Origin: Hyalangium minutum
GTDB taxonomy: Bacteria > Myxococcota > Myxococcia > Myxococcales > Myxococcaceae
Assembly (NCBI RefSeq): GCF_000737315.1
Contig: NZ_JMCB01000001.1
Span: forward strand, 868,001 to 932,000
Length of the DNA: 64,000 bases
Direction: 5' to 3'
A model generated the notes under the pieces. That model ran no database searches. It was not told the origin of the DNA and saw only the letters and a program-made list of their open reading frames with translations. Shown here in pieces: positions 52,648 to 63,636 of the stretch. The first letter of the stretch is position 1, and the number at the start of each line of letters is the position of its first letter. A program made the translations under genes and the position numbers.

Positions 52648-53511
52648 ATGGCCGAGCAGCCCATCCAGAACTGCGAGGTGCGCTTCCAGTTCCAGTGTCC
52701 CAAGCAGTGGGATGCCTTGCAGTCCACCGCTGAGCCCGGTGTACGCGCGTGCAGCCAGTGCCAGAAGTCCGTGTACTTCTGCCAGAGCGCCGAGGAAGCC
52801 GCCCAGCACGCTCAGCTCGGGCACTGCATCGCCGTGCCCTCCTGGCTCTCCGCGCCGCAGGACTCGCCCGAGGAGTTCGAGCGCCTTCAGGAACTGGCTC
52901 GCCAACATGGCATGCCCGCGGTCCGCTTGCGCGGCTTCAGGCCTGATCCGGAGCTTCTCAAGCGAGTGGGCCTGGAGGTGGCCCGCAAGTACACCGTGCT
53001 CCCCGTGGGCCAGTCCGGCAGTGTGATCACCCTGGCCCTGAGCGACCCCACGAACCGCATGGCCATCGACGACGTGATGTTCTACACCGGCTACAACGTG
53101 AAGCCCGTGGTGGCTTCCCAGAGAGAGATCCTCTCCGTCATTGACCGGGCCACCCAGGAGGACAAGTCCCATATCGATGTAGGCGTGGTCGATGAGCGGG
53201 CGTTCCTGAATCCGAAGCCCACGCCCGCCCGGCTCTCCCTCGTCTCGGAAGATGGCGTGGAGTGGTACGTCCACCGGGATCGCTTCGTCATCGGCCGGGG
53301 CAAGGACTGCGACTTCCAGCCGGACTCCCGCATCCTCTCGCGCCACCACGCCGTCATCGTCCGCGAGGGCGAGGACTACTTCCTCGAAGACCTGGCCTCC
53401 ACCAGCGGCGTCTGGCTCGGCCGGGAGCGGCTCCAAGGGCGCCACCGTCTCGGCCCCGGCGATGAGTTCACCCTGGCCGACGTGAAGCTCCGTGCCCAGT
53501 TCCGCGGGTGA
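52648..53511 (+). CDS. Cys-rich N-terminal domain + T2SSE_N (GspE/PilB N-terminal) + FHA domain protein
   Basis: Six Cys in residues 9-60; LLKRVGLEVARKYTVLP...LALSDPTN...TGYNVKPVVAS; FHA IGRG...SRHHA...EDLAS. Confidence 0.8.
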   Translation: MAEQPIQNCEVRFQFQCPKQWDALQSTAEPGVRACSQCQKSVYFCQSAEEAAQHAQLGHCIAVPSWLSAPQDSPEEFERLQELARQHGMPAVRLRGFRPDPELLKRVGLEVARKYTVLPVGQSGSVITLALSDPTNRMAIDDVMFYTGYNVKPVVASQREILSVIDRATQEDKSHIDVGVVDERAFLNPKPTPARLSLVSEDGVEWYVHRDRFVIGRGKDCDFQPDSRILSRHHAVIVREGEDYFLEDLASTSGVWLGRERLQGRHRLGPGDEFTLADVKLRAQFRG

Positions 53512-55331: not shown

Positions 55332-56249
55332 TCAGCGTTCCACGCAGAGCACTCCGCCTGCATCGTCGGCGATGAACGCCCGCCCGGTGTCATCGAGTGC
55401 CAGTCCCTCGGCGCGCTTGCCGGGGAGGGGCATCTTCCGCACCAACTTCCCCTCCAGGGTCAGCTCATAGACCCACCCCAAGCCCTCGCCACTGCTGGAC
55501 TCGGTGATCAGGAAGTGGCCCGACGCCCGGTCATAGGTGATGTCCGAGGCCTGGTACTCAATGACTGTGGACAGGTCGATGGCCTCCACCGCCTTGGCCT
55601 TGCCGTCCTTCTTGTCGAGCGGCACCTTGAGCTTCACCAACCGGGGCGGCTGCTGATTGACGCAGTAGAACGCGAGCTGCTCGGGCACGTAGCACACGCC
55701 CTCGGCGCTCTTGTTCGCGTCATCGCCGATGATCCGCTGGCCGTGGATCTTCGTGTCCACCTCGTACTCCGCCTGGATCTTGAGCGAGTCCGGATCAAGC
55801 GCGTAGAGCTTCGGAGACTTCTTCTCCTCGAGGACGAAGAGCCGGCCGTTGGGGCCCACCGTGACGCCCTCGAATCCCCGGCTCCCGAGCTTGGCACTGC
55901 GCAGCACCTTCCCGTCCCGCGTGAGCTCGGCCACATCCCCGTGGTCACCCACCACGAAGAGCGTGCCGCGGCCTGGGTGGAAGGCGATGCCGCTGGGCTC
56001 CTTCACGGCCTTGGAGTGGACGGGCAGCACCGAACGCACCTGGGCCGACGGACCGAAGGGCAGCTCCGCTTGACGCTCTGAAGAGGGCGCACTGGGCCGC
56101 ACCTCCACGGGAGAAGACGCGATGGGAGCGGGCATGATGACTCCGGGAAGCGCTGCAGTAGGCCTCCCAGTCATATCGCGTCTCACTCCTGGCCCGTCAG
56201 GACTGGCCGCCAACTCTAGCCAGTCAGAGTCGGGGGCCACGTCTGACAT
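55332..56249 (-). CDS. SdiA-regulated/YjiK-like beta-propeller protein
   Basis: EPSGIAF, LFVVGD, FEGVT, AEGV, ASDITYD, AEGLALD repeats; start uncertain. Confidence 0.82.
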   Translation of the reverse strand: MSDVAPDSDWLELAASPDGPGVRRDMTGRPTAALPGVIMPAPIASSPVEVRPSAPSSERQAELPFGPSAQVRSVLPVHSKAVKEPSGIAFHPGRGTLFVVGDHGDVAELTRDGKVLRSAKLGSRGFEGVTVGPNGRLFVLEEKKSPKLYALDPDSLKIQAEYEVDTKIHGQRIIGDDANKSAEGVCYVPEQLAFYCVNQQPPRLVKLKVPLDKKDGKAKAVEAIDLSTVIEYQASDITYDRASGHFLITESSSGEGLGWVYELTLEGKLVRKMPLPGKRAEGLALDDTGRAFIADDAGGVLCVER

Positions 56250-56265: not shown

Positions 56266-57390
56266 CTACATGCTGGGCTGGACAGGCACCGCGGGGGGCG
56301 AGTTCGTGTCGCGCTTCTGCTCCACACTCGAAGCGGCGCGGAACTTCTGCTCGATCCCCTCGTAGGGGCCCCAGCCATGAGTCTCAGTGATCCGGGCCCG
56401 CAGCGTATCCTCACGCTGCCGCAGCGCCGCAGGATACTCCTGCTCGACGCTGGGGTCGAACACCCGATCGAGCAGATACGCCAAGCGCAGGCCCGCGTAG
56501 AGAACTCGCTCATTGGCCACGACGATGCCCTGCGTATAGTACACATCCCCCAGCGTCTGCCTCGGGACGGCACTGTAAGCGGTCGCGCGGTCGATGCGGC
56601 TCTCGTTCATCCAGTCGATGGGCAGCGTGTGGACGATGCTCTGCCACTGGCTCACGGGCATCTTCCGGGAGACCGCCTTCGCGTACGCCTTGTGACGATG
56701 AACGGAGTCACCGGGCACCTCCGGCAGGTGGTGCACGAACTGGTCGATCATGTGGAAGTCCCACACAGCATGGAGGTTGACGGGCTTCTGCTGCACCTTG
56801 GCCTCCACGCACTCGCCGGTGATGGGCTCGAACCAGATGTTGCTGCCCACACACTCCGCCCGGGGCGAGGCGCGCAGAATCTCGGGATACTCGTACGAGG
56901 ACACACCGTACCAGCTCACCTCATAGCCCTTGTTGCCCCCCTGATCATCCGGCCGTCCCACGTGCAGGGGCTGGTGCAGATCCCCCACCACGTGCCCGAG
57001 AAACCGCACCCAGGTGCGCTTCATCTCATCCGGGGTGGCGGAGGCGCGCAGCATGTCGAGCGCGATGAGGATGGAGCGCACGGGATCGCCCTCCTCACTC
57101 ACGACGCCCTTGTCGAAGTAGTCCGCGTGGTCGTGGATGTCCGCGAAGTGCCACTTGGCGGTGAACTTCCACGGGCTCGACTCGCCGCGCACCATGTCCG
57201 GCCACGTGCACTGCTGGGCGAACTCGGGTCCCATAAGGGCATCCAGCCGGGCCCGCGTGATGGCCGAGACATTGTTGTAGGCAATCTCGCACGCCGCCCA
57301 GTGCCCCGTCTCACGCCACGCGTGAGCCTGCGACGCCCAGAAGGTCAGAGTTGCGGCGAGGAACCCCTTCACAGCCTGGTGCTGCTTCAT
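56266..57390 (-). CDS. Secreted S1/P1 nuclease
   Basis: Signal peptide ending AHA, then W-RETGH; TWPDMVR, WHF, HVVGDLHQPLH, GGN, NLHAVWD. Confidence 0.93.
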   Translation of the reverse strand: MKQHQAVKGFLAATLTFWASQAHAWRETGHWAACEIAYNNVSAITRARLDALMGPEFAQQCTWPDMVRGESSPWKFTAKWHFADIHDHADYFDKGVVSEEGDPVRSILIALDMLRASATPDEMKRTWVRFLGHVVGDLHQPLHVGRPDDQGGNKGYEVSWYGVSSYEYPEILRASPRAECVGSNIWFEPITGECVEAKVQQKPVNLHAVWDFHMIDQFVHHLPEVPGDSVHRHKAYAKAVSRKMPVSQWQSIVHTLPIDWMNESRIDRATAYSAVPRQTLGDVYYTQGIVVANERVLYAGLRLAYLLDRVFDPSVEQEYPAALRQREDTLRARITETHGWGPYEGIEQKFRAASSVEQKRDTNSPPAVPVQPSM

Positions 57391-57646
57391 ATGTGACTTC
57401 CCCCTGTCCGGCGTGCAGTGCCCTGGCGCTGCACGACTCCGGCTTATCAACGGGGCGAGGGTGCGCTTATTCACGACGCAGACGACACGCACCTGCAGGA
57501 GTCAGCGCGCTCTCTGGTGGCCAGCACCGATCGCCGGTCCCCCTGGGAGGAGGGGTCGGTCTGGTCGTCAGCGCTCTCTGGTGAGCCTTGGCCGCTCACT
57601 CGTATTTCGACCAGCCCTCCTGGTTGGCTGCGCCGATCGCCTCGTA

Positions 57647-57667: not shown

Positions 57668-57789
57668 GGACGCACCTACATCCTCTACCCACCCACTCCC
57701 AGCCACTCACTTTCTGGGAAACCGCCCCCCTCACAACATTCCGTTCAGCTCCGGCGATAATCCGTCAAAGCACTTCCAGGAGAGATCCC

Positions 57790-59652
57790 GTGGCACGTAT
57801 CGATGGTGGTGGTTCGCGTCAGGTCCAGGCGCGCAAGCCGGAGCCGAAGCCCGAAGTTCAGGCCAAGTCCGCTCCCGCCTCCGAAAAATCCGCTCCCAAG
57901 GCCAAGGCCGAGTCCAAGCCGCAGCGCGATGGCTTCGACTCCAAGGGCAACCCGCAGGCCGCCGAGAAACCCAAGAGCCACGTCGCCGAGCGCAACACCA
58001 AGGCCTTCAACTCCGGCGCCCGCAACGAGATCAACCGCTTCGCCCAGTCCTCCAAGCCCGCCGCTACCACCAACAAGGACGGCTCGGTCACCCGCTCGAA
58101 AACCACCGAGAAGGGCAAGAACACCCGCACCCAAGAGCTCACCACCGACAAGGGCAAGCTCCGCGAGGCCCAGCTCAAGTACACCAACACCTCCACCACG
58201 AAGGTGAAGGGCGGCACCAACGAGGTGAAGAACTCCCACACCTCGCAGAGCGACATGTTCGGCCGCACCACCTCCTCCAAGCAGCGCGAGGCCACCGAGA
58301 CGCGCGGCAACACCGCCACCACCAAGTCCCGCACCGAGGCCACCGACCGCTGGGGCAACGTCAAGACGACCAAGGGCGAGACCACCAAGGTCTCCGACGG
58401 TGACAACTCCAAGAGCACCTCCAGCTCCGTCACCACCGATGGCAAGGGCAACCGCGCCGTCTCCAACGAGACGAAGACGGTCACCAAGGACGGCAACACC
58501 ACCACCACGAAGACCACCAAGAACTCGAGCGGCTCGGAGACGACCCACTCCTCCACCGCCAAGTACGAGAACGGCACGTACACCCTCGGTGAGTCCAAGG
58601 ACTGGAAGAACCAGAAGTTCAATACCGAGAAGAGCTTCTCCAAGGAGAAGGAGCTCAAGCCCAGCAGCGAGGACAAGGGCTTCACCCAGAAGCAGAAGAC
58701 CGACAAGCTCGGCAACGCGCAGACCGCGGGCAACCTGCTCGGCGCCGCCGGCGTGAAGAAGACGATCACCAAGGGCGAAGTCGACAAGAGCAAGATGCAC
58801 GAGAACAACAGCTCGACCGACCCCAACACCTTCGTCGGCAACCGCTACGGCTACTCCGGCAAGCACGAGGTGACGATCGGCGCCGATGGCGTGAACGCCT
58901 CGTTCAACCGCGAGGCCAAGGCCGGGCTCTACGCCGAGACCAAGACGCCTGACATCAAGAAGGGCGAGGCCGGCTACCAGGTCGGCGCCAACGCCAAGCT
59001 CGAGGCCGCCGCCAGCGTGGATGCCAAGGGCAAGCTGGACCTCAACGGCCTGGACGCCAGCGTCAACGCCAAGGTCGGCGTCACCGCCGAGGCCTCCGTC
59101 AACGGCAAGGCCCAGACGAAGAGCGTCAAGGTCGCCGGCGTGGACGTGAACGCCTCCGTCGAGGGCACCGCCAAGGTCTCCGCCTCCGCCACCGCCGAGG
59201 CCTCCGGCAAGGTGAAGGTCACCCGCAACCCGCCCACCGCCATCGCCGAGGGCACCGTCGGCGCCTCCGCCGTCGTCAAGGCCGAGGCCGAGGTGAAGGC
59301 CTCCGCGGGTCCCTTCGCCGTCAAGGCCACCGGCTACGCCAGCGCTGGCGCCGAGGCCAAGGCCACCGGCACCATTGGCTACGAGGATGGCAAGATCAAG
59401 CTCGGCGGCAGCCTGGGCGCCGCGCTCGGCGTGGGCGCGGGCGGCTCGGTCAACGTCGAGGTCGACGTCAAGCAGATCGGCGAGATGGCGAAGAACACCG
59501 CCGTGAAGGTCGCCGACGCCAACGGTGACGGCAAGCTGGGCCTGGATGACGCGAAGGCCGTGGCCAACAACGTCAAGGACGCCGCCGTCAACACCGCCAA
59601 GAACGTCGTGGACAACACGAAGAAGACTGTCATGGGGTGGCTCGGCTGGTGA
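57790..59652 (+). CDS. Hypothetical 620-aa Cys-free protein, Thr/Lys-rich N-half and Ala/Val/Gly beta-rich C-half
   Basis: AGGAG RBS then GTG; strongly GC3-biased codons; no signal peptide; alternating hydrophobic/polar strands. Confidence 0.85.
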   Translation: MARIDGGGSRQVQARKPEPKPEVQAKSAPASEKSAPKAKAESKPQRDGFDSKGNPQAAEKPKSHVAERNTKAFNSGARNEINRFAQSSKPAATTNKDGSVTRSKTTEKGKNTRTQELTTDKGKLREAQLKYTNTSTTKVKGGTNEVKNSHTSQSDMFGRTTSSKQREATETRGNTATTKSRTEATDRWGNVKTTKGETTKVSDGDNSKSTSSSVTTDGKGNRAVSNETKTVTKDGNTTTTKTTKNSSGSETTHSSTAKYENGTYTLGESKDWKNQKFNTEKSFSKEKELKPSSEDKGFTQKQKTDKLGNAQTAGNLLGAAGVKKTITKGEVDKSKMHENNSSTDPNTFVGNRYGYSGKHEVTIGADGVNASFNREAKAGLYAETKTPDIKKGEAGYQVGANAKLEAAASVDAKGKLDLNGLDASVNAKVGVTAEASVNGKAQTKSVKVAGVDVNASVEGTAKVSASATAEASGKVKVTRNPPTAIAEGTVGASAVVKAEAEVKASAGPFAVKATGYASAGAEAKATGTIGYEDGKIKLGGSLGAALGVGAGGSVNVEVDVKQIGEMAKNTAVKVADANGDGKLGLDDAKAVANNVKDAAVNTAKNVVDNTKKTVMGWLGW

Positions 59653-59711
59653 CGTGAACCTGCCTCCCGGCTGCTCGTCTTCACCCGGCTTCTGAGGGAT
59701 ACTTCCGACCG

Positions 59712-61025
59712 ATGGTCCAGAGCGAACTCTACCGACGTGGCTACGAGCAGCTGAAGGCAGGCAACTACGAGGAGGCGAAGCGTCTCTTCCGGGAGAACGA
59801 GGAGAAGGCCGGCACCGCCGCCGAGACCAAGTCCTTGTTGCGCCAGGCGGAGACGCTGCTCGCCAAGGGCGACGTCAACGCCGCCGCAGCGCTCTACGAG
59901 AAGCTCCTGGAGCGCAACCCGGGTCTGCCCGAAGTCTACCTCGGGCTGACCCGCATCAGCCTCTTCACCGGCCAGCGGGACGCGGCGCGGGTGCACGCCA
60001 CCGCGGCCACCCGGCTCGGGCCGGAGCAAGGCCTGGCCTGGGCCCTGCTCGGCATGGTGCACGAGGCGGAGGGAGACATGCCCACCGCCCTGCAGCACCT
60101 GAAGAAGGCCTCGGAGGTATCGCCCTCGGTCTTCCTGTGCCAGTTCAACTACGGCCGGGTGCTGGCCGCGGCCGGCCGCCCCGCCGAGGGCATCGTCCCG
60201 CTCAAGCGCGCCACCGAGCTGGAGCCGAACAACCCGGACGGCTTCTACACGCTCGGCATCCTCTTCAAGCAGGCCCGCCAGTACGAGAACGCGCTCAAGG
60301 CCTTCGAGAAGGCGAAGGATCTGGCCCCCAAGAACGTGGACGCCTGGGCCACGCTCGCGGACGTGCTCTTCGAGGTGAAGGAGTTCCAGGCGGCGCGCGA
60401 CATCCTGGACCGGGGCCTCGCGGCCTGCGGAGACCATCCGGCGCTGCTGGAGAAGGCGCTGGCCACGGCGATGATGCTCTCGGATGCCGAGGGTGCCATC
60501 GGCTACGTGGAGCGCGAGCTCAAGGTGGTGCCGAACCACGAGCAGGGCTGGCTCAACCTGGCCCACCTGCTGCTGCTCACCAAGGACTTCGACAAGAGCG
60601 AGCAAGCGGCGCGCGAGCTGCTCCAGCGCAACCCGAAGAACTGGGAGGCGTGGTTCCACCTGGGCAACCTCTACGAGGCCGTCCCCGCCGAGGCGAAGGC
60701 CGAGGAGGCCTACCGCAAGGCCATCGAGCTGGCCCCCGACAGCTGGAAGCCCCTGGCCAACCTCGCCGGGCTCTTCATCCAGATGGACTCGCGCGCCAAG
60801 AACTCCGAGGCCATTCCCCTGCTGGAGCAGGCGCAGATGCTCGCGCCCAAGGGCGAGTGGCGCGTGCAGTACAACCTGGCGCTCGGCTACACCAAGCTCG
60901 GCAAGCGCGAGCGCGCCCTGGAGCTCGCCCGGAAGATCCAGCGCGAAGCCCCCGCCAGCGACCCCATGGTCGCCGAGGCCCGCAAGCTGGAGTCCAACCT
61001 GCTCGAGGCGGCCGCACGCCACTGA
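59712..61025 (+). CDS. All-TPR protein without a catalytic domain
   Basis: Repeated TPR consensus (AWALLG, QFNYG, FYTLG, AWATLA, GWLNLA, AWFHLG, QYNLA); no signal peptide. Confidence 0.92.
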   Translation: MVQSELYRRGYEQLKAGNYEEAKRLFRENEEKAGTAAETKSLLRQAETLLAKGDVNAAAALYEKLLERNPGLPEVYLGLTRISLFTGQRDAARVHATAATRLGPEQGLAWALLGMVHEAEGDMPTALQHLKKASEVSPSVFLCQFNYGRVLAAAGRPAEGIVPLKRATELEPNNPDGFYTLGILFKQARQYENALKAFEKAKDLAPKNVDAWATLADVLFEVKEFQAARDILDRGLAACGDHPALLEKALATAMMLSDAEGAIGYVERELKVVPNHEQGWLNLAHLLLLTKDFDKSEQAARELLQRNPKNWEAWFHLGNLYEAVPAEAKAEEAYRKAIELAPDSWKPLANLAGLFIQMDSRAKNSEAIPLLEQAQMLAPKGEWRVQYNLALGYTKLGKRERALELARKIQREAPASDPMVAEARKLESNLLEAAARH

Positions 61026-61971: not shown

Positions 61972-63636
61972 GTGAACTTGGGAGTGAAGGCACACGTCGT
62001 CATCCTTGGCCTGCTGCTCGCGCTGGTAGGGCCCGCGCATGCCCAGGGGAGTCCCCCGCGCCGCCCTCCCCTCGTCTTCAGCGGCAACCTCGTGCTGAAT
62101 GACGAGGTCTACCTGGCCGTGCTCGATCTGCCGCCGGACTTCGCGCCCGACAAGAGCGGCGCCGCCCTGGTGCGCTCCCGGCTGCTCACGTTCCTGCACC
62201 GCGCGGGCTACGAGCTGGCGCGCGTCGAGACGGCGGTGGAGGGCAACCGCATCCTCGTGGACATCGACGAGGGGCGCGTCGAGAAGCTCATCCTCCGAGG
62301 CCAGGGCTCGCTGCGCACGGTGCAGGTGCTGCTGAGCCTGAGCCTGCCACACAACGTCTTCAACCGGCCCTACCTCGAGCGGCAGCTGGCGGATCTGCAC
62401 GCGCAGAGCGGCGTGGAGTTCGAGTGCTTCAAGAAGGAGCCCACCGGCACGAAGCCGAGCACGGGGACGGAGTGCTTCAAGCTGGTACCCACCAGCGAGG
62501 TGAAGCACGTAGGTCCCCAGGTGGAGGACCTGGGTCCCATCGTCGATGACATTGGCCGGTTCGTCGGCCATCCCCTCATCCCTCCCCGCGCGGACTACGA
62601 GCTGCACATCTTCCTGCGCCGCCGAGAGTGGGCCACGGGGCTGGGCGTCGTCGCGGGGCTCGGCGGCGGAGAGGGCCTGCGGCTGGGCGCCGAGTACCGC
62701 GGTGAGGGGCTCGCCCTCGCGAAGGATCGCTGGAGCGCCGGCGCGCAGCTCGGGGCGAAGATCCGCTCGCGCATCTCCAATGACCGGGCATACCTGGCGC
62801 TGACCCGTGCCCAGGCGGAGCTGCACTGGTACACGCCGCGCCTGCGCCTCGGCCTGCGGCCCGTGCTGACGGCCCGCGGGGAGCTCATCAGCCGCCAGCG
62901 CCCCGACATCGGGCTGGAGAGCTACTACGCCATGCGCGCGCAGCTCACGCTGGGCCTGAGCTATGACTTGTTCCGAGGTGCCACGGTGGCCCTGGGAGTG
63001 GGGGGCGAGGAGCTCGACGTCTTCGGGCTGAAGCCGGCAATGGAGGGCGTGGGCCCTGCCGCGGGCGTGGGCCCGAGCTCCACGCTGCGCCCCTACCTGA
63101 GCAGCACGGCGCACCTGGTGTTCGACATGGATGAGGTCCGCCGGGATCGCCGCACCGAGCTCGAGTTCAACGGGCGCCAATACCCGCGCGAGTCCGGGCG
63201 CGGCTACGGCGTCATCTCGTACCGGTTCCAGCGCGTCAACGAGGTGGGCTGGCATGATCTGATGCTCACGAGCCGGGGCGCCTGGCTCTGGGGCAACGTG
63301 CCCTTCATCGAGGAGCAGCCCGTGGGCGGCCTGCACGTGCGCGGCGTCTTCGATGATCGCTTCTACGCCAAGCACGTGGCCAGCGGAGGCATGGAGGTGC
63401 GCTTCTCCCTCACGCGCGACATCTACAAGGTGGGGGGGTTCGCGGACGTGGCCGTGTTCGGGGAGCTCGATCGGGGCAGCGGCTCCGAGAAGCCCCGCGT
63501 GGTGGGCAGCGCGGGCCCGAGCTTCCACGTGCTCATCGCGGACGTCTTCCAGTTGGATCTCTATTACGCGCTCGGGTTCGCGGGCCACGGAGAGGCCGAG
63601 CGCGGCTTCACGGCGGCCCTCCGGCAAGCGTTCTGA
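61972..63636 (+). CDS. Omp85-family outer membrane protein with two POTRA-like domains
   Basis: Signal peptide (..PAHA); GY..ARV...IDEGRVEK; amphipathic strands; VRGVF loop-6-type motif; C-terminal F. Confidence 0.82.
   Translation: MNLGVKAHVVILGLLLALVGPAHAQGSPPRRPPLVFSGNLVLNDEVYLAVLDLPPDFAPDKSGAALVRSRLLTFLHRAGYELARVETAVEGNRILVDIDEGRVEKLILRGQGSLRTVQVLLSLSLPHNVFNRPYLERQLADLHAQSGVEFECFKKEPTGTKPSTGTECFKLVPTSEVKHVGPQVEDLGPIVDDIGRFVGHPLIPPRADYELHIFLRRREWATGLGVVAGLGGGEGLRLGAEYRGEGLALAKDRWSAGAQLGAKIRSRISNDRAYLALTRAQAELHWYTPRLRLGLRPVLTARGELISRQRPDIGLESYYAMRAQLTLGLSYDLFRGATVALGVGGEELDVFGLKPAMEGVGPAAGVGPSSTLRPYLSSTAHLVFDMDEVRRDRRTELEFNGRQYPRESGRGYGVISYRFQRVNEVGWHDLMLTSRGAWLWGNVPFIEEQPVGGLHVRGVFDDRFYAKHVASGGMEVRFSLTRDIYKVGGFADVAVFGELDRGSGSEKPRVVGSAGPSFHVLIADVFQLDLYYALGFAGHGEAERGFTAALRQAF

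Follow-up and report, generated by a model that had tools for sequence, protein, structure and literature searches.

What does a cysteine-free, beta-rich protein with no export signal do when it is encoded next to a protein composed only of tetratricopeptide repeats (TPRs)? The question is raised by two adjacent genes of the myxobacterium Hyalangium minutum, located toward the end of a 64,000-nucleotide (nt) stretch of contig NZ_JMCB01000001.1 (positions 868,001 to 932,000 of the forward strand; the whole stretch is referred to as the window). Gene A (57790 to 59652, + strand, including the stop codon at 59650 to 59652) codes for a modular protein of 620 amino acids (aa). Gene B, or the TPR gene (59712 to 61025, +), codes for a predicted cytoplasmic, signal-less all-TPR protein of 437 aa (TPR437) with two Cys residues. 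An initial annotation of this stretch viewed the two as an undescribed effector and its dedicated partner. Our computational analysis leaves little doubt that the pair is a real functional unit, and we lean toward the view that protein A is a Sec-independent exported, membrane-active effector for which the TPR protein serves as a cytoplasmic chaperone or neutralizer.

The A and TPR genes

The GTG start of gene A at 57790 lies 5 nt downstream of a Shine-Dalgarno–like AGGAGAG read in the sequence (57779 to 57785, +) and is fixed by the conserved N termini of homologs, which open with M-A-R-I-D or, across the family, with M-[AST]-R-[IV]-[DN]. Both genes are real, since sequence searches returned 81 homologs of protein A and 156 close homologs of the TPR protein. 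The 59–base pair (bp) spacer between the genes (59653 to 59711, +) lacks a terminator and provides the TPR gene with a ribosome-binding site, GAGGGA; no sigma-54 or sigma-70 promoter or terminator-like site was found between A and the TPR gene on the + strand. This arrangement suggests that the two genes probably form one operon.

The composition of protein A agrees with the description in the initial annotation. There are no Cys residues among its 620 aa, which include 80 Lys, 78 Ala, 71 Thr, 65 Gly, and 54 Ser; a Thr/Lys/Ser/Asn-rich segment spans residues 61 to 300. The 19-residue Kyte-Doolittle mean peaks at just 1.13, at LGGSLGAALGVGAGGSVNV. The protein thus lacks any hydrophobic segment and, with it, any Sec, Tat, or lipoprotein signal and any transmembrane helix. 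A longer in-frame open reading frame (ORF) starting at 57418 was also checked, and the extension brings no signal-like segment. The C/G-ending codons had been taken as a sign of high expression. This idea was dropped, since the G+C content of third codon positions in gene A (0.945) matches that of the TPR gene (0.952) and of the neighboring genes for a PD40 propeller (0.94) and a 554-aa protein (0.915); such codons prevail genome-wide and are uninformative on expression.

TPR437, correctly recognized from the outset as signal-less and TPR-only, matches only TPR models, which span residues ~5 to 420, and its 19-residue hydropathy maximum is 0.91. Compared with NCBIfam, it stays below all equivalog cutoffs: it scores 70.0 bits against TIGR02552 (SycD/LcrH; 136 model positions), whose cutoff is 104.8, and 53.9 bits against SctY, whose cutoff is 70. 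Scores higher than those of the chaperone models of type III secretion systems (T3SSs) were reached with general TPR families such as MamA, again below cutoff. Membership of TPR437 in the SycD/LcrH family was rejected on account of the failed cutoff, the length (437 aa versus ~160 aa), and the absence of a T3SS core gene from the window and the 70 related loci described below.

The two genes are conserved together

Neighborhoods were surveyed in 70 loci on contigs from one genome per species. All are from Myxococcota, including Archangium, Cystobacter, Vitiosangium, Citreicoccus, and Myxococcaceae metagenome-assembled genomes (MAGs), except one from a bin labeled Pseudomonadota (L060). A full-length ortholog of the TPR protein (48 to 83% identity) flanks the A homolog in 51 loci, directly downstream in 46 and divergently upstream in 5. 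At two loci, the downstream sequence is too short to judge. The 17 copies without a TPR gene (L025, L026, L031, L032, L036, L039, L041 to L044, L046, L048 to L051, L053, and L064) constitute a second paralog class of A with 40 to 46% identity and a shorter N terminus, and 14 of them are found in assemblies that also contain a TPR-linked copy. One TPR protein may serve both classes. Some genomes hold two or three A-family copies, with or without the TPR gene.

When the 877 genes of the 70 loci were clustered, only A (61 loci) and TPR (44 loci) were broadly linked, with all other clusters present in 13 loci or fewer. The window neighbors of the pair (genes for an S1/P1 nuclease, the PD40 propeller, the 554-aa protein, an SdiA-regulated–type propeller, a methyltransferase, and PadR) are not co-conserved with it across the 70 loci. 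In its taxonomic range, the TPR family matches A; its members are uniformly 430 to 445 aa long and more strongly conserved than A. Both proteins are also present in Stigmatella aurantiaca DW4/3-1, where their GenBank accessions, ADO71637 and ADO71636, are consecutive.

The linkage extends to distant relatives of A. A profile search of 1.84 billion representatives revealed ~300 relatives (representative clusters at 50% identity), the distant ones having only the C-terminal core and tail in common with A. A gene for a TPR protein of 396 to 461 aa follows the A-like gene in all seven distant relatives that were checked by looking up the encoding contig and for which downstream sequence exists (L073, L075, L078, L079, L082, L083, and L084), and likewise in metagenome locus L092. 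The TPR neighbor is kept even where the N-terminal half of the relative is unrelated to that of A. In one protein, P0315 (L071:738-2909, JGI metagenome 3300041024), the core is fused to a region colinear with residues 206 to 419 of TPR437 (28% identity, E = 9e-15). P0315 contains several Cys residues and lacks the EF-hand and the aromatic tail. It comes from one gene call in a metagenome and may represent either a genuine fusion or an artifact of gene calling. The tracking of the core by the TPR gene across unrelated N termini argues for a direct physical relationship. The survey bears out the earlier proposal of a dedicated, co-conserved pair. The family is also undescribed, as had been suggested: protein A has no match in Pfam (E ≤ 0.01), NCBIfam, PADLOC, or PHROGs.

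Replacement of the N-terminal half takes several forms among relatives that retain the core. The N-terminal 440 aa of P0225 (L073:5613-8063) look PD-(D/E)xK-like by eye and have no Pfam match; here, the core and the TPR neighbor are kept. P0317 (L074:8001-11309) and the protein encoded at L092:5738-7681 also belong to this group, in which the N-terminal half may also give way to hairpin repeats of D/K/T/N/V or to a helical, Q-rich region. The TPR neighbor is visible in L073 and L092 only, as the L074 contig stops ~65 bp after the P0317 gene. In an Archangium MAG (L018:11784-13439), a gene for a 551-aa papain-like (C1) peptidase with DUF4384, a Gly-rich N terminus, and one transmembrane segment sits between the A and TPR genes.

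Domain architecture and predicted fold of protein A

The fold of protein A was predicted with AlphaFold2 in two runs, one with a 39-sequence alignment [mean predicted local distance difference test score (pLDDT) of 75.6] and one with the C-terminal 281 residues alone (79.4); the two runs agree on the fold. Residues 1 to 57 (57790 to 57960, +) comprise the MARID motif and a cationic K/A/P-rich segment predicted to be disordered (pLDDT below 50), as the initial annotation had supposed for this charged N terminus. The region differs in length and sequence across the family, and in the homolog P0044 it is replaced by PG_binding_1 (PF01471). In the first 25 residues of family members, Ser, Thr, Pro, Asn, and Gln account for 39.5%, Leu for 2.8%, and acidic residues for 5.5%. 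T3SS signals are likewise rich in the former and poor in Leu and acidic residues; the A-family N terminus is therefore compatible with a T3SS-type signal, albeit without specificity.

Residues 90 to 288 (58057 to 58653, +) are predicted to form a hydrophilic, Thr/Lys/Ser-rich up-and-down beta meander (pLDDT of 85 to 96) with DG, GN, and KG turns, whose strands grow from ~10 to 26 residues. Distant relatives carry unrelated N-terminal regions in its place. The conserved core (residues 347 to 559; 58828 to 59466, +) is modeled as eight amphipathic beta strands of 18 to 25 residues arranged in hairpins (pLDDT of 78 to 91), with Ala, Val, and Gly on one face. It is the sole part common to the whole superfamily, actinobacterial proteins with type VII secretion system (T7SS) signals included, and distant relatives align to positions ~330 to 600 of the A profile. 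The strictly alternating strands noted initially are evident from the hydrophobic periodicity of residues 401 to 560, with a power of 50 to 52 at period 2 versus 5 to 6 at 2.2, while a periodicity of 3.6 to 4 in residues 561 to 620 indicates a helix. An apolipoprotein- or late embryogenesis abundant (LEA)–type helical reading of the alternating region was rejected because the period in residues 401 to 560 is 2 and not 3.6, with which AlphaFold2 concurs; such a reading holds only for the last ~33 residues.

As can be seen from the family alignment, nearly all invariant columns fall in the last four strands of the core. Among the invariant columns are TRNPPTA, GASAV.K.E, SAGPF, Y.SAGAE, DGK, and a glycine zipper. 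The zipper, GGSLGAALGVGAG (residues 539 to 551; 59404 to 59442, +), has the form G539-x3-G543-x3-G547-x3-G551, and its residues G543, A544, A545, G547, G549, and G551 are invariant. The GxxxGxxxG pattern was found in 80 of the 81 family members and in 109 of 133 distant representatives, and the zipper segment of A aligns with GGDLGAALGVGAK of the Streptomyces protein P0355.

The core is followed by a helix-flanked loop, DANGDGKLGLDD (residues 576 to 587; 59515 to 59550, +), predicted to bind calcium in the manner of EF-hands and dockerins. The loop matches D-x-[DN]-x-[DN]-G-x-[ILV]-x-x-x-[DE] at every position; D576 and D587 are invariant, and D580 and G581 are nearly so. Protein A itself has no Pfam match at E ≤ 1; among the 39 aligned family members, there are weak matches to Dockerin_1 in 13 and to EF-hand_1 in 10, and distant relatives repeat the loop four to seven times at scores above the Pfam cutoff (EF-hand_7, 52 to 69 bits versus 30). 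The remaining residues, 588 to 620 (59551 to 59649, +), consist of three 11-mers (AKAVANNVKDA, AVNTAKNVVDN, and TKKTVMGWLGW) with the character of an amphipathic helix; the AlphaFold2 helix at residues 585 to 617 is of low confidence. The C-terminal WLGW represents the aromatic end of the family, [WF]-x-[GPS]-[WF]. Some homologs lengthen the tail with many extra 11-mers that match apolipoprotein, perilipin, and phasin models.

No structural relative was detected when the full-length model and the core alone were compared with PDB and BFVD using Foldseek (TM-score of ≤0.21), and profile searches of PDB sequences with A yielded only dockerin-loop and low-complexity matches. The top Foldseek matches are outer-membrane barrels and the S-layer protein SlpA. 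Together with the hydrophilic, repetitive, Thr/Lys-rich sequence and the database name “outer membrane protein” borne by one entry (Cystobacter fuscus), they might suggest that A is an ordinary outer-membrane barrel, S-layer, spore-coat, or LEA-type stress protein. We consider this very improbable and largely refuted. The TM-scores of 0.1 to 0.21 and root mean square deviations of 15 to 30 Å reflect a generic likeness of beta meanders, a signal peptide is lacking, also when the ORF is extended to its maximum length, aromatic residues are few, and an ordered conserved core with a TPR partner does not suit a disordered stress protein. Outer-membrane barrel, S-layer, and autotransporter assignments were rejected on the first two of these grounds. 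An RTX-like type I substrate was also rejected, as A has no RTX-type Pfam match and no transporter gene is conserved nearby.

The core ends putative type VII–secreted proteins

Searches with a profile limited to the core return proteins with an N-terminal T7SS_signal (PF21725, 86 to 103 bits versus a cutoff of 27) or WXG100_2 domain (PF25547, 92 bits), in which the core is always the C-terminal domain. One of them comes from a Streptomyces isolate, and the rest come from metagenomes or unnamed assemblies; in a core profile search of 5.8 billion proteins, they appeared at E = 7e-14. The isolate protein, P0355 (Streptomyces sp. RKND-216, E4198_05155), has C-terminal ~170 to 200 residues homologous to the core of A, with a BLASTP identity of 35% over 139 columns (E = 3e-12). 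Alignment of the A core with the T7SS-type family by hhalign gave a probability of 97.8% (E = 8e-13, 166 columns). The likeness of the A tail to actinobacterial type VII–associated proteins, which the initial annotation had put forward, is thus true homology of the C-terminal core.

The actinobacterial T7SS proteins and A share the zipper segment (EAFAGAKA...AEAWAG...DGK...GG.LGAALGVG...V.V.D), a short helical tail whose end is hydrophobic or aromatic, and a downstream gene for a soluble partner. They differ at the N terminus, where the actinobacterial proteins have a T7SS_signal or WXG100_2 domain and A has neither, and in the partner, which is ~170 aa long in the actinobacterial loci as opposed to the TPR protein next to A. 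The actinobacterial proteins are uncharacterized, and Pfam offers no model for their C-terminal domain. No T7SS is known from Myxococcota. The possibility that A is a T7SS substrate by virtue of its N-domain was rejected: there is no WXG100, LXG, or T7SS_signal match, and its N terminus is predicted to be disordered and then beta.

Directly downstream of the T7SS-type gene, three of four loci encode homologous soluble proteins of ~170 to 180 aa (35 to 60% identity; L085:2246-2773, L086:5373-5885, and L087:6382-6924). The fourth (L093:4419-4892) encodes a 157-aa protein with no detectable similarity to the other three and a weak LpqN-like match. These ~157- to 180-aa proteins, which belong to no Pfam family, are candidates for an immunity or chaperone role toward the core domain. 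As judged from sequence, the core is attached to different secretion-targeting N termini in different phyla and in this respect appears to behave as secreted effector domains usually do.

A link to type III secretion in one lineage

In one distant lineage, the pair lies within or next to a T3SS operon. A contig of a MAG binned as Acidobacteriota (L078; GCA_039196305.1, JBCCUV010000163.1, 1-13277) carries, on one strand, sctQ-R-S-T-U-V (sctQ is partial at the contig edge), a gene for an FHA protein, an sctD-like gene with a TIG domain, orf166, the A-like gene, and the TPR gene. In a second Acidobacteriota-binned MAG (L079; GCA_038748685.1), the operon continues downstream to a sigma-54 activator. 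Unassigned ORFs in these operons, orf166 among them, encode 110 and 166 aa (and 468 and 261 aa in L079); they may be further T3SS parts. The initial annotation had connected the pair with the needle-less T3SS-like system (T3SS*) and the Tad/Kil machinery of myxobacteria. What it stated about these systems agrees with the literature (PMC10849154, PMC12075869, and PMC8460266), and a T3SS link was found in the distant lineage; in the window and near the pair in the 70 Myxococcota loci, there is no T3SS or Tad gene.

The operon raises the question of whether A could be part of the export machine. Classical T3SS translocators are chaperoned by TPR proteins, and the predicted hairpins of 23 to 25 residues would be long enough to cross an envelope layer. 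Protein A might then be a conduit or translocon that replaces the needle, secretin, or translocon of a type III–like machine and through which other cargo, such as signal-less hydrolases, passes, with the TPR protein acting as an assembly chaperone. The position of the A-like and TPR genes in one operon after sctV and the sctD-like gene is consistent with this idea, as are the signal-less hydrolase genes that adjoin A-family genes and the lack of a dedicated secretin and of needle or translocon homologs in the myxobacterial T3SS* (PMC10849154). However, the pair never adjoins T3SS genes in Myxococcota, the two or three copies found in some genomes with or without TPR suit cargo more than a machine core, and the same core ends actinobacterial T7SS substrates, where it could not be a T3SS part. 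We therefore regard a conduit role as quite unlikely.

An FHA domain is also found in the window, in a 287-aa MshEN + FHA protein (52648 to 53511, +) encoded 4.3 kb upstream of A and not co-conserved with the pair. The domain matches Yop-YscD_cpl weakly. It also matches the FHA of SctD, the sole match to a T3SS component in the window and the 70 loci. Other genes flanking the pair include those for the S1/P1-type nuclease (56266 to 57390, −) and the SdiA-regulated/NHL-type propeller (55332 to 56249, −), which are divergent from A across a ~400-bp intergenic region. The 554-aa protein (61972 to 63636, +) has a clear signal peptide, MNLGVKAHVVILGLLLALVGPAHAQG, and no Pfam or NCBIfam match; it is not co-conserved and is possibly an outer-membrane protein.

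Signal-less peptidoglycan hydrolases and the site of action

Signal-less PG_binding_1 hydrolases with CHAP, NlpC/P60, or VanY domains are encoded near A-family genes in 14 of the 70 loci, in one case between A and TPR. Their architectures are 4xPG_binding_1+CHAP, 2xPG_binding_1+NlpC/P60, and PG_binding_1+VanY. Genes for hydrolases of ~485 aa are convergent to the TPR gene and usually lie just after it (L008, L009, L013, L014, L017, L019, L023, L035, and L059); those for ~350-aa hydrolases are found ~2 kb downstream of the TPR-less paralog (L025, L032, L048, and L053), and there is another at L013:12694-13335. The window itself contains no signal-less hydrolase gene of this type. The hydrolase N termini MTIRIPTTP, MPIRTPV, and MALRINSRGSQ, the last of which belongs to the enzyme encoded between A and TPR, look like the start motif of the A family, which hints that the hydrolases and A may share a non-Sec export signal.

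The same hydrolases could be seen as endolysin-like partners in a self-lysis or abortive module. In such a module, A would permeabilize the inner membrane of its producer from the cytoplasm, as gasdermins or holins do, and would be restrained by the TPR protein until a signal came; the outcome could be developmental autolysis, phage defense, or release of cell contents. The absence of signals in both proteins, the amphipathic core with its glycine zipper, and the defense-type neighbors AAA_15/21 and GmrSD at L084 fit this scheme, and the glycine-zipper toxin EsxX is toxic from both membrane sides, the cytoplasmic side included (PMC12744356). Yet, an anti-phage or phage origin of A was rejected for want of any PADLOC or PHROG match, no conserved protease or trigger gene lies beside the pair, and the neighborhoods are mostly housekeeping. 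Since the T7SS N-domains and the T3SS operon favor export and EF-hand loops are hard to reconcile with cytoplasmic calcium levels, self-lysis seems improbable to us.

Several features hint that A acts outside the cytoplasm: the EF-hand/dockerin loops, the PG_binding_1 domain of P0044, the nearby peptidoglycan hydrolases, and the absence of Cys. The latter extends to 79 of the 81 members of the family and to 102 of the 133 distant representatives; most TPR partners, by contrast, contain two to four Cys residues. The opposite localization is assumed if A is a cytoplasmic scaffold or coat that attaches to the inner membrane face or to lipid bodies via the 11-mer helix and aromatic tail and polymerizes through its Ala/Val-faced sheets like bactofilins or phasins and perilipins, with the TPR protein as an assembly adaptor. 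Neither protein has a signal peptide, the tail and its extensions match apolipoprotein, perilipin, phasin, and DUF883 models, the natural fusion of core and TPR suggests one shared compartment, and the pair is found amid housekeeping genes with export machinery not nearby. There are also subthreshold bactofilin matches in 5 of the 39 members. A bactofilin identity (PF04519) was nevertheless rejected, the score of A being 15.3 bits versus a cutoff of 27.9 and AlphaFold2 predicting long hairpins instead of a beta helix. The absence of Cys across the family, the EF-hand/dockerin loops, the PG_binding_1 fusion, the presence of the core at the end of proteins with T7SS secretion domains, and the T3SS operon in one lineage all speak against a scaffold, which we judge unlikely.

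Proposed mechanism and comparison with known systems

Under the effector reading, the functional heart of A would be its C-terminal module, i.e., four beta hairpins with the glycine zipper, the calcium loop, the 11-mer helix, and the aromatic end. The N-terminal half would most likely provide an export signal and a spacer or a wall-contacting part. The TPR protein would remain in the cytoplasm and bind A, most plausibly at the aggregation-prone glycine-zipper core, keeping it soluble and harmless to the producer before passing it to a Sec-independent exporter. In this myxobacterial group, the needle-less type III–like system is the best candidate exporter; that a T3SS-like system is the route of A in Myxococcota is a tentative suggestion. 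Once exported, the module would be guided by calcium binding and its amphipathic tail to the membrane of another cell, where the hairpins and the glycine zipper would oligomerize and cause permeabilization. We infer the binding of A by the TPR protein, the export of A and its route, and the membrane permeabilization; the period-2 strands, the invariant glycine zipper, and the 11-mer amphipathic tail were counted as sequence features pointing to membrane activity.

A functional parallel may be provided by glycine-zipper toxins. In EsxX-ExiAB of Staphylococcus aureus, TelE-TipE of Streptococcus gallolyticus, Tse4, and CdzC/D, GxxxGxxxG is found near the C terminus of a signal-less protein, as in A. 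Such toxins are delivered by T7SSs and by type VI and type I secretion systems (PMC10434224) and combine a specialized secretion system with a co-occurring gene for a soluble partner (PMC12744356 and PMC10434224). Before EsxX is secreted, its glycine zipper is buried in a groove by the soluble ExiAB dimer, which co-occurs with esxX (PMC12744356). The differences are considerable: TelE is modeled as alpha-helical (PMC10434224), whereas the zipper of A is predicted to lie in a beta hairpin belonging to a ~220-residue sheet, and the partner of A is a 10-repeat TPR protein, unlike the neutralizers of these toxins. A has no PDB sequence or fold match to characterized glycine-zipper toxins, the sequences of TelE, Tse4, and CdzC themselves not having been compared. 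Protein A may resemble glycine-zipper toxins with soluble neutralizers in its working, relatedness aside.

T3SS translocators offer a second comparison. YopB/YopD with SycD/LcrH and IpaB/IpaC with IpgC are signal-less, membrane-inserting substrates encoded beside a cytoplasmic all-TPR protein, as proposed for A; the translocators are helical with transmembrane helices, whereas A is beta-rich. Class II T3SS chaperones have three TPRs in ~160 aa. By analogy with beta-barrel pore-forming toxins and gasdermins, the hairpins of A could line a large oligomeric barrel, and gasdermins, like A, are made without a signal peptide. They differ from A, which has no palmitoylated Cys or activating protease, presents an apolar face of Ala, Val, and Gly only, and gives Foldseek TM-scores of ≤0.21. 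Classical polymorphic toxins consist of a conserved N-terminal trafficking domain together with a C-terminal toxin that varies, whereas in A the C-terminal part is conserved and the N-terminal part is variable. Where classical systems have an immunity gene immediately downstream, A and its T7SS-type relatives are followed by a partner gene, but the partner of A is more conserved than A itself.

A number of observations weigh against a chaperoned, exported effector. Known T3SS translocator chaperones are about one-third as large as the TPR protein, whose scores lie below every NCBIfam equivalog cutoff. Typical immunity genes differ from the TPR gene, which is better conserved than A, and a conserved gene for a membrane immunity protein was not found among the loci. 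The placement of the conserved part at the C terminus and of the variable part at the N terminus is the reverse of the classical polymorphic toxin layout. In a core-TPR fusion such as P0315, which comes from one gene call in a metagenome, chaperone and substrate would share a single polypeptide, which is unusual for such a pair. The apolar strand face consists of Ala, Val, and Gly only with few aromatics, and the AlphaFold2 monomer is unlike any known pore-forming toxin (Foldseek TM-score of ≤0.21). Neither the 64-kb window nor the regions up to 10 kb from the pair in any of the 70 Myxococcota loci contain a secretion-system gene, and the T3SS linkage comes from two related Acidobacteriota-binned MAGs of one lineage. 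No Myxococcus xanthus homolog was present among the named matches of A or the TPR protein. A literature search by the identifiers of the Stigmatella pair and by Pfam accessions returned no experimental work on any member, and a general search of the secretome literature returned nothing relevant to A.

Discussion

The myxobacterial T3SS* has no dedicated secretin and no needle or translocon homologs and is nevertheless required for prey lysis (PMC10849154; also PMC12075869 and PMC8460266); no identified substrate of it was found in the literature searched. The A-TPR pair is a candidate for such cargo on account of three features in combination: a signal-less protein A with a core shared with T7SS proteins, a T3SS operon containing the pair in one lineage, and a cytoplasmic TPR partner. 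In its most specific form, this proposal holds that the A family is T3SS* cargo or the absent translocon itself, a TPR-chaperoned beta-hairpin/glycine-zipper pore former that is delivered at prey contact together with the signal-less peptidoglycan hydrolases and whose module has been coupled independently to T7SSs. We regard this form as doubtful. If it is true, A would be the first T3SS translocator or effector of a beta type, with a fold that has no solved relative.

Secreted effectors with cytoplasmic partners are already known; what is new here is the domain family, a fold for which no relative has been solved, and the type of partner. The core defines a family of ~300 representative clusters, found in Myxococcota, in Actinobacteria, and in some genomes binned as Acidobacteriota or Planctomycetota, that has no Pfam or NCBIfam model. 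If the proposed mechanism is true, the masking of a glycine zipper by a soluble partner before export, as known for ExiAB, would extend to TPR proteins. Experiments are feasible, since S. aurantiaca DW4/3-1, which carries the pair, is genetically tractable. For the biology of myxobacteria, the A-TPR pair represents a concrete candidate cargo of their contact-dependent killing machinery.

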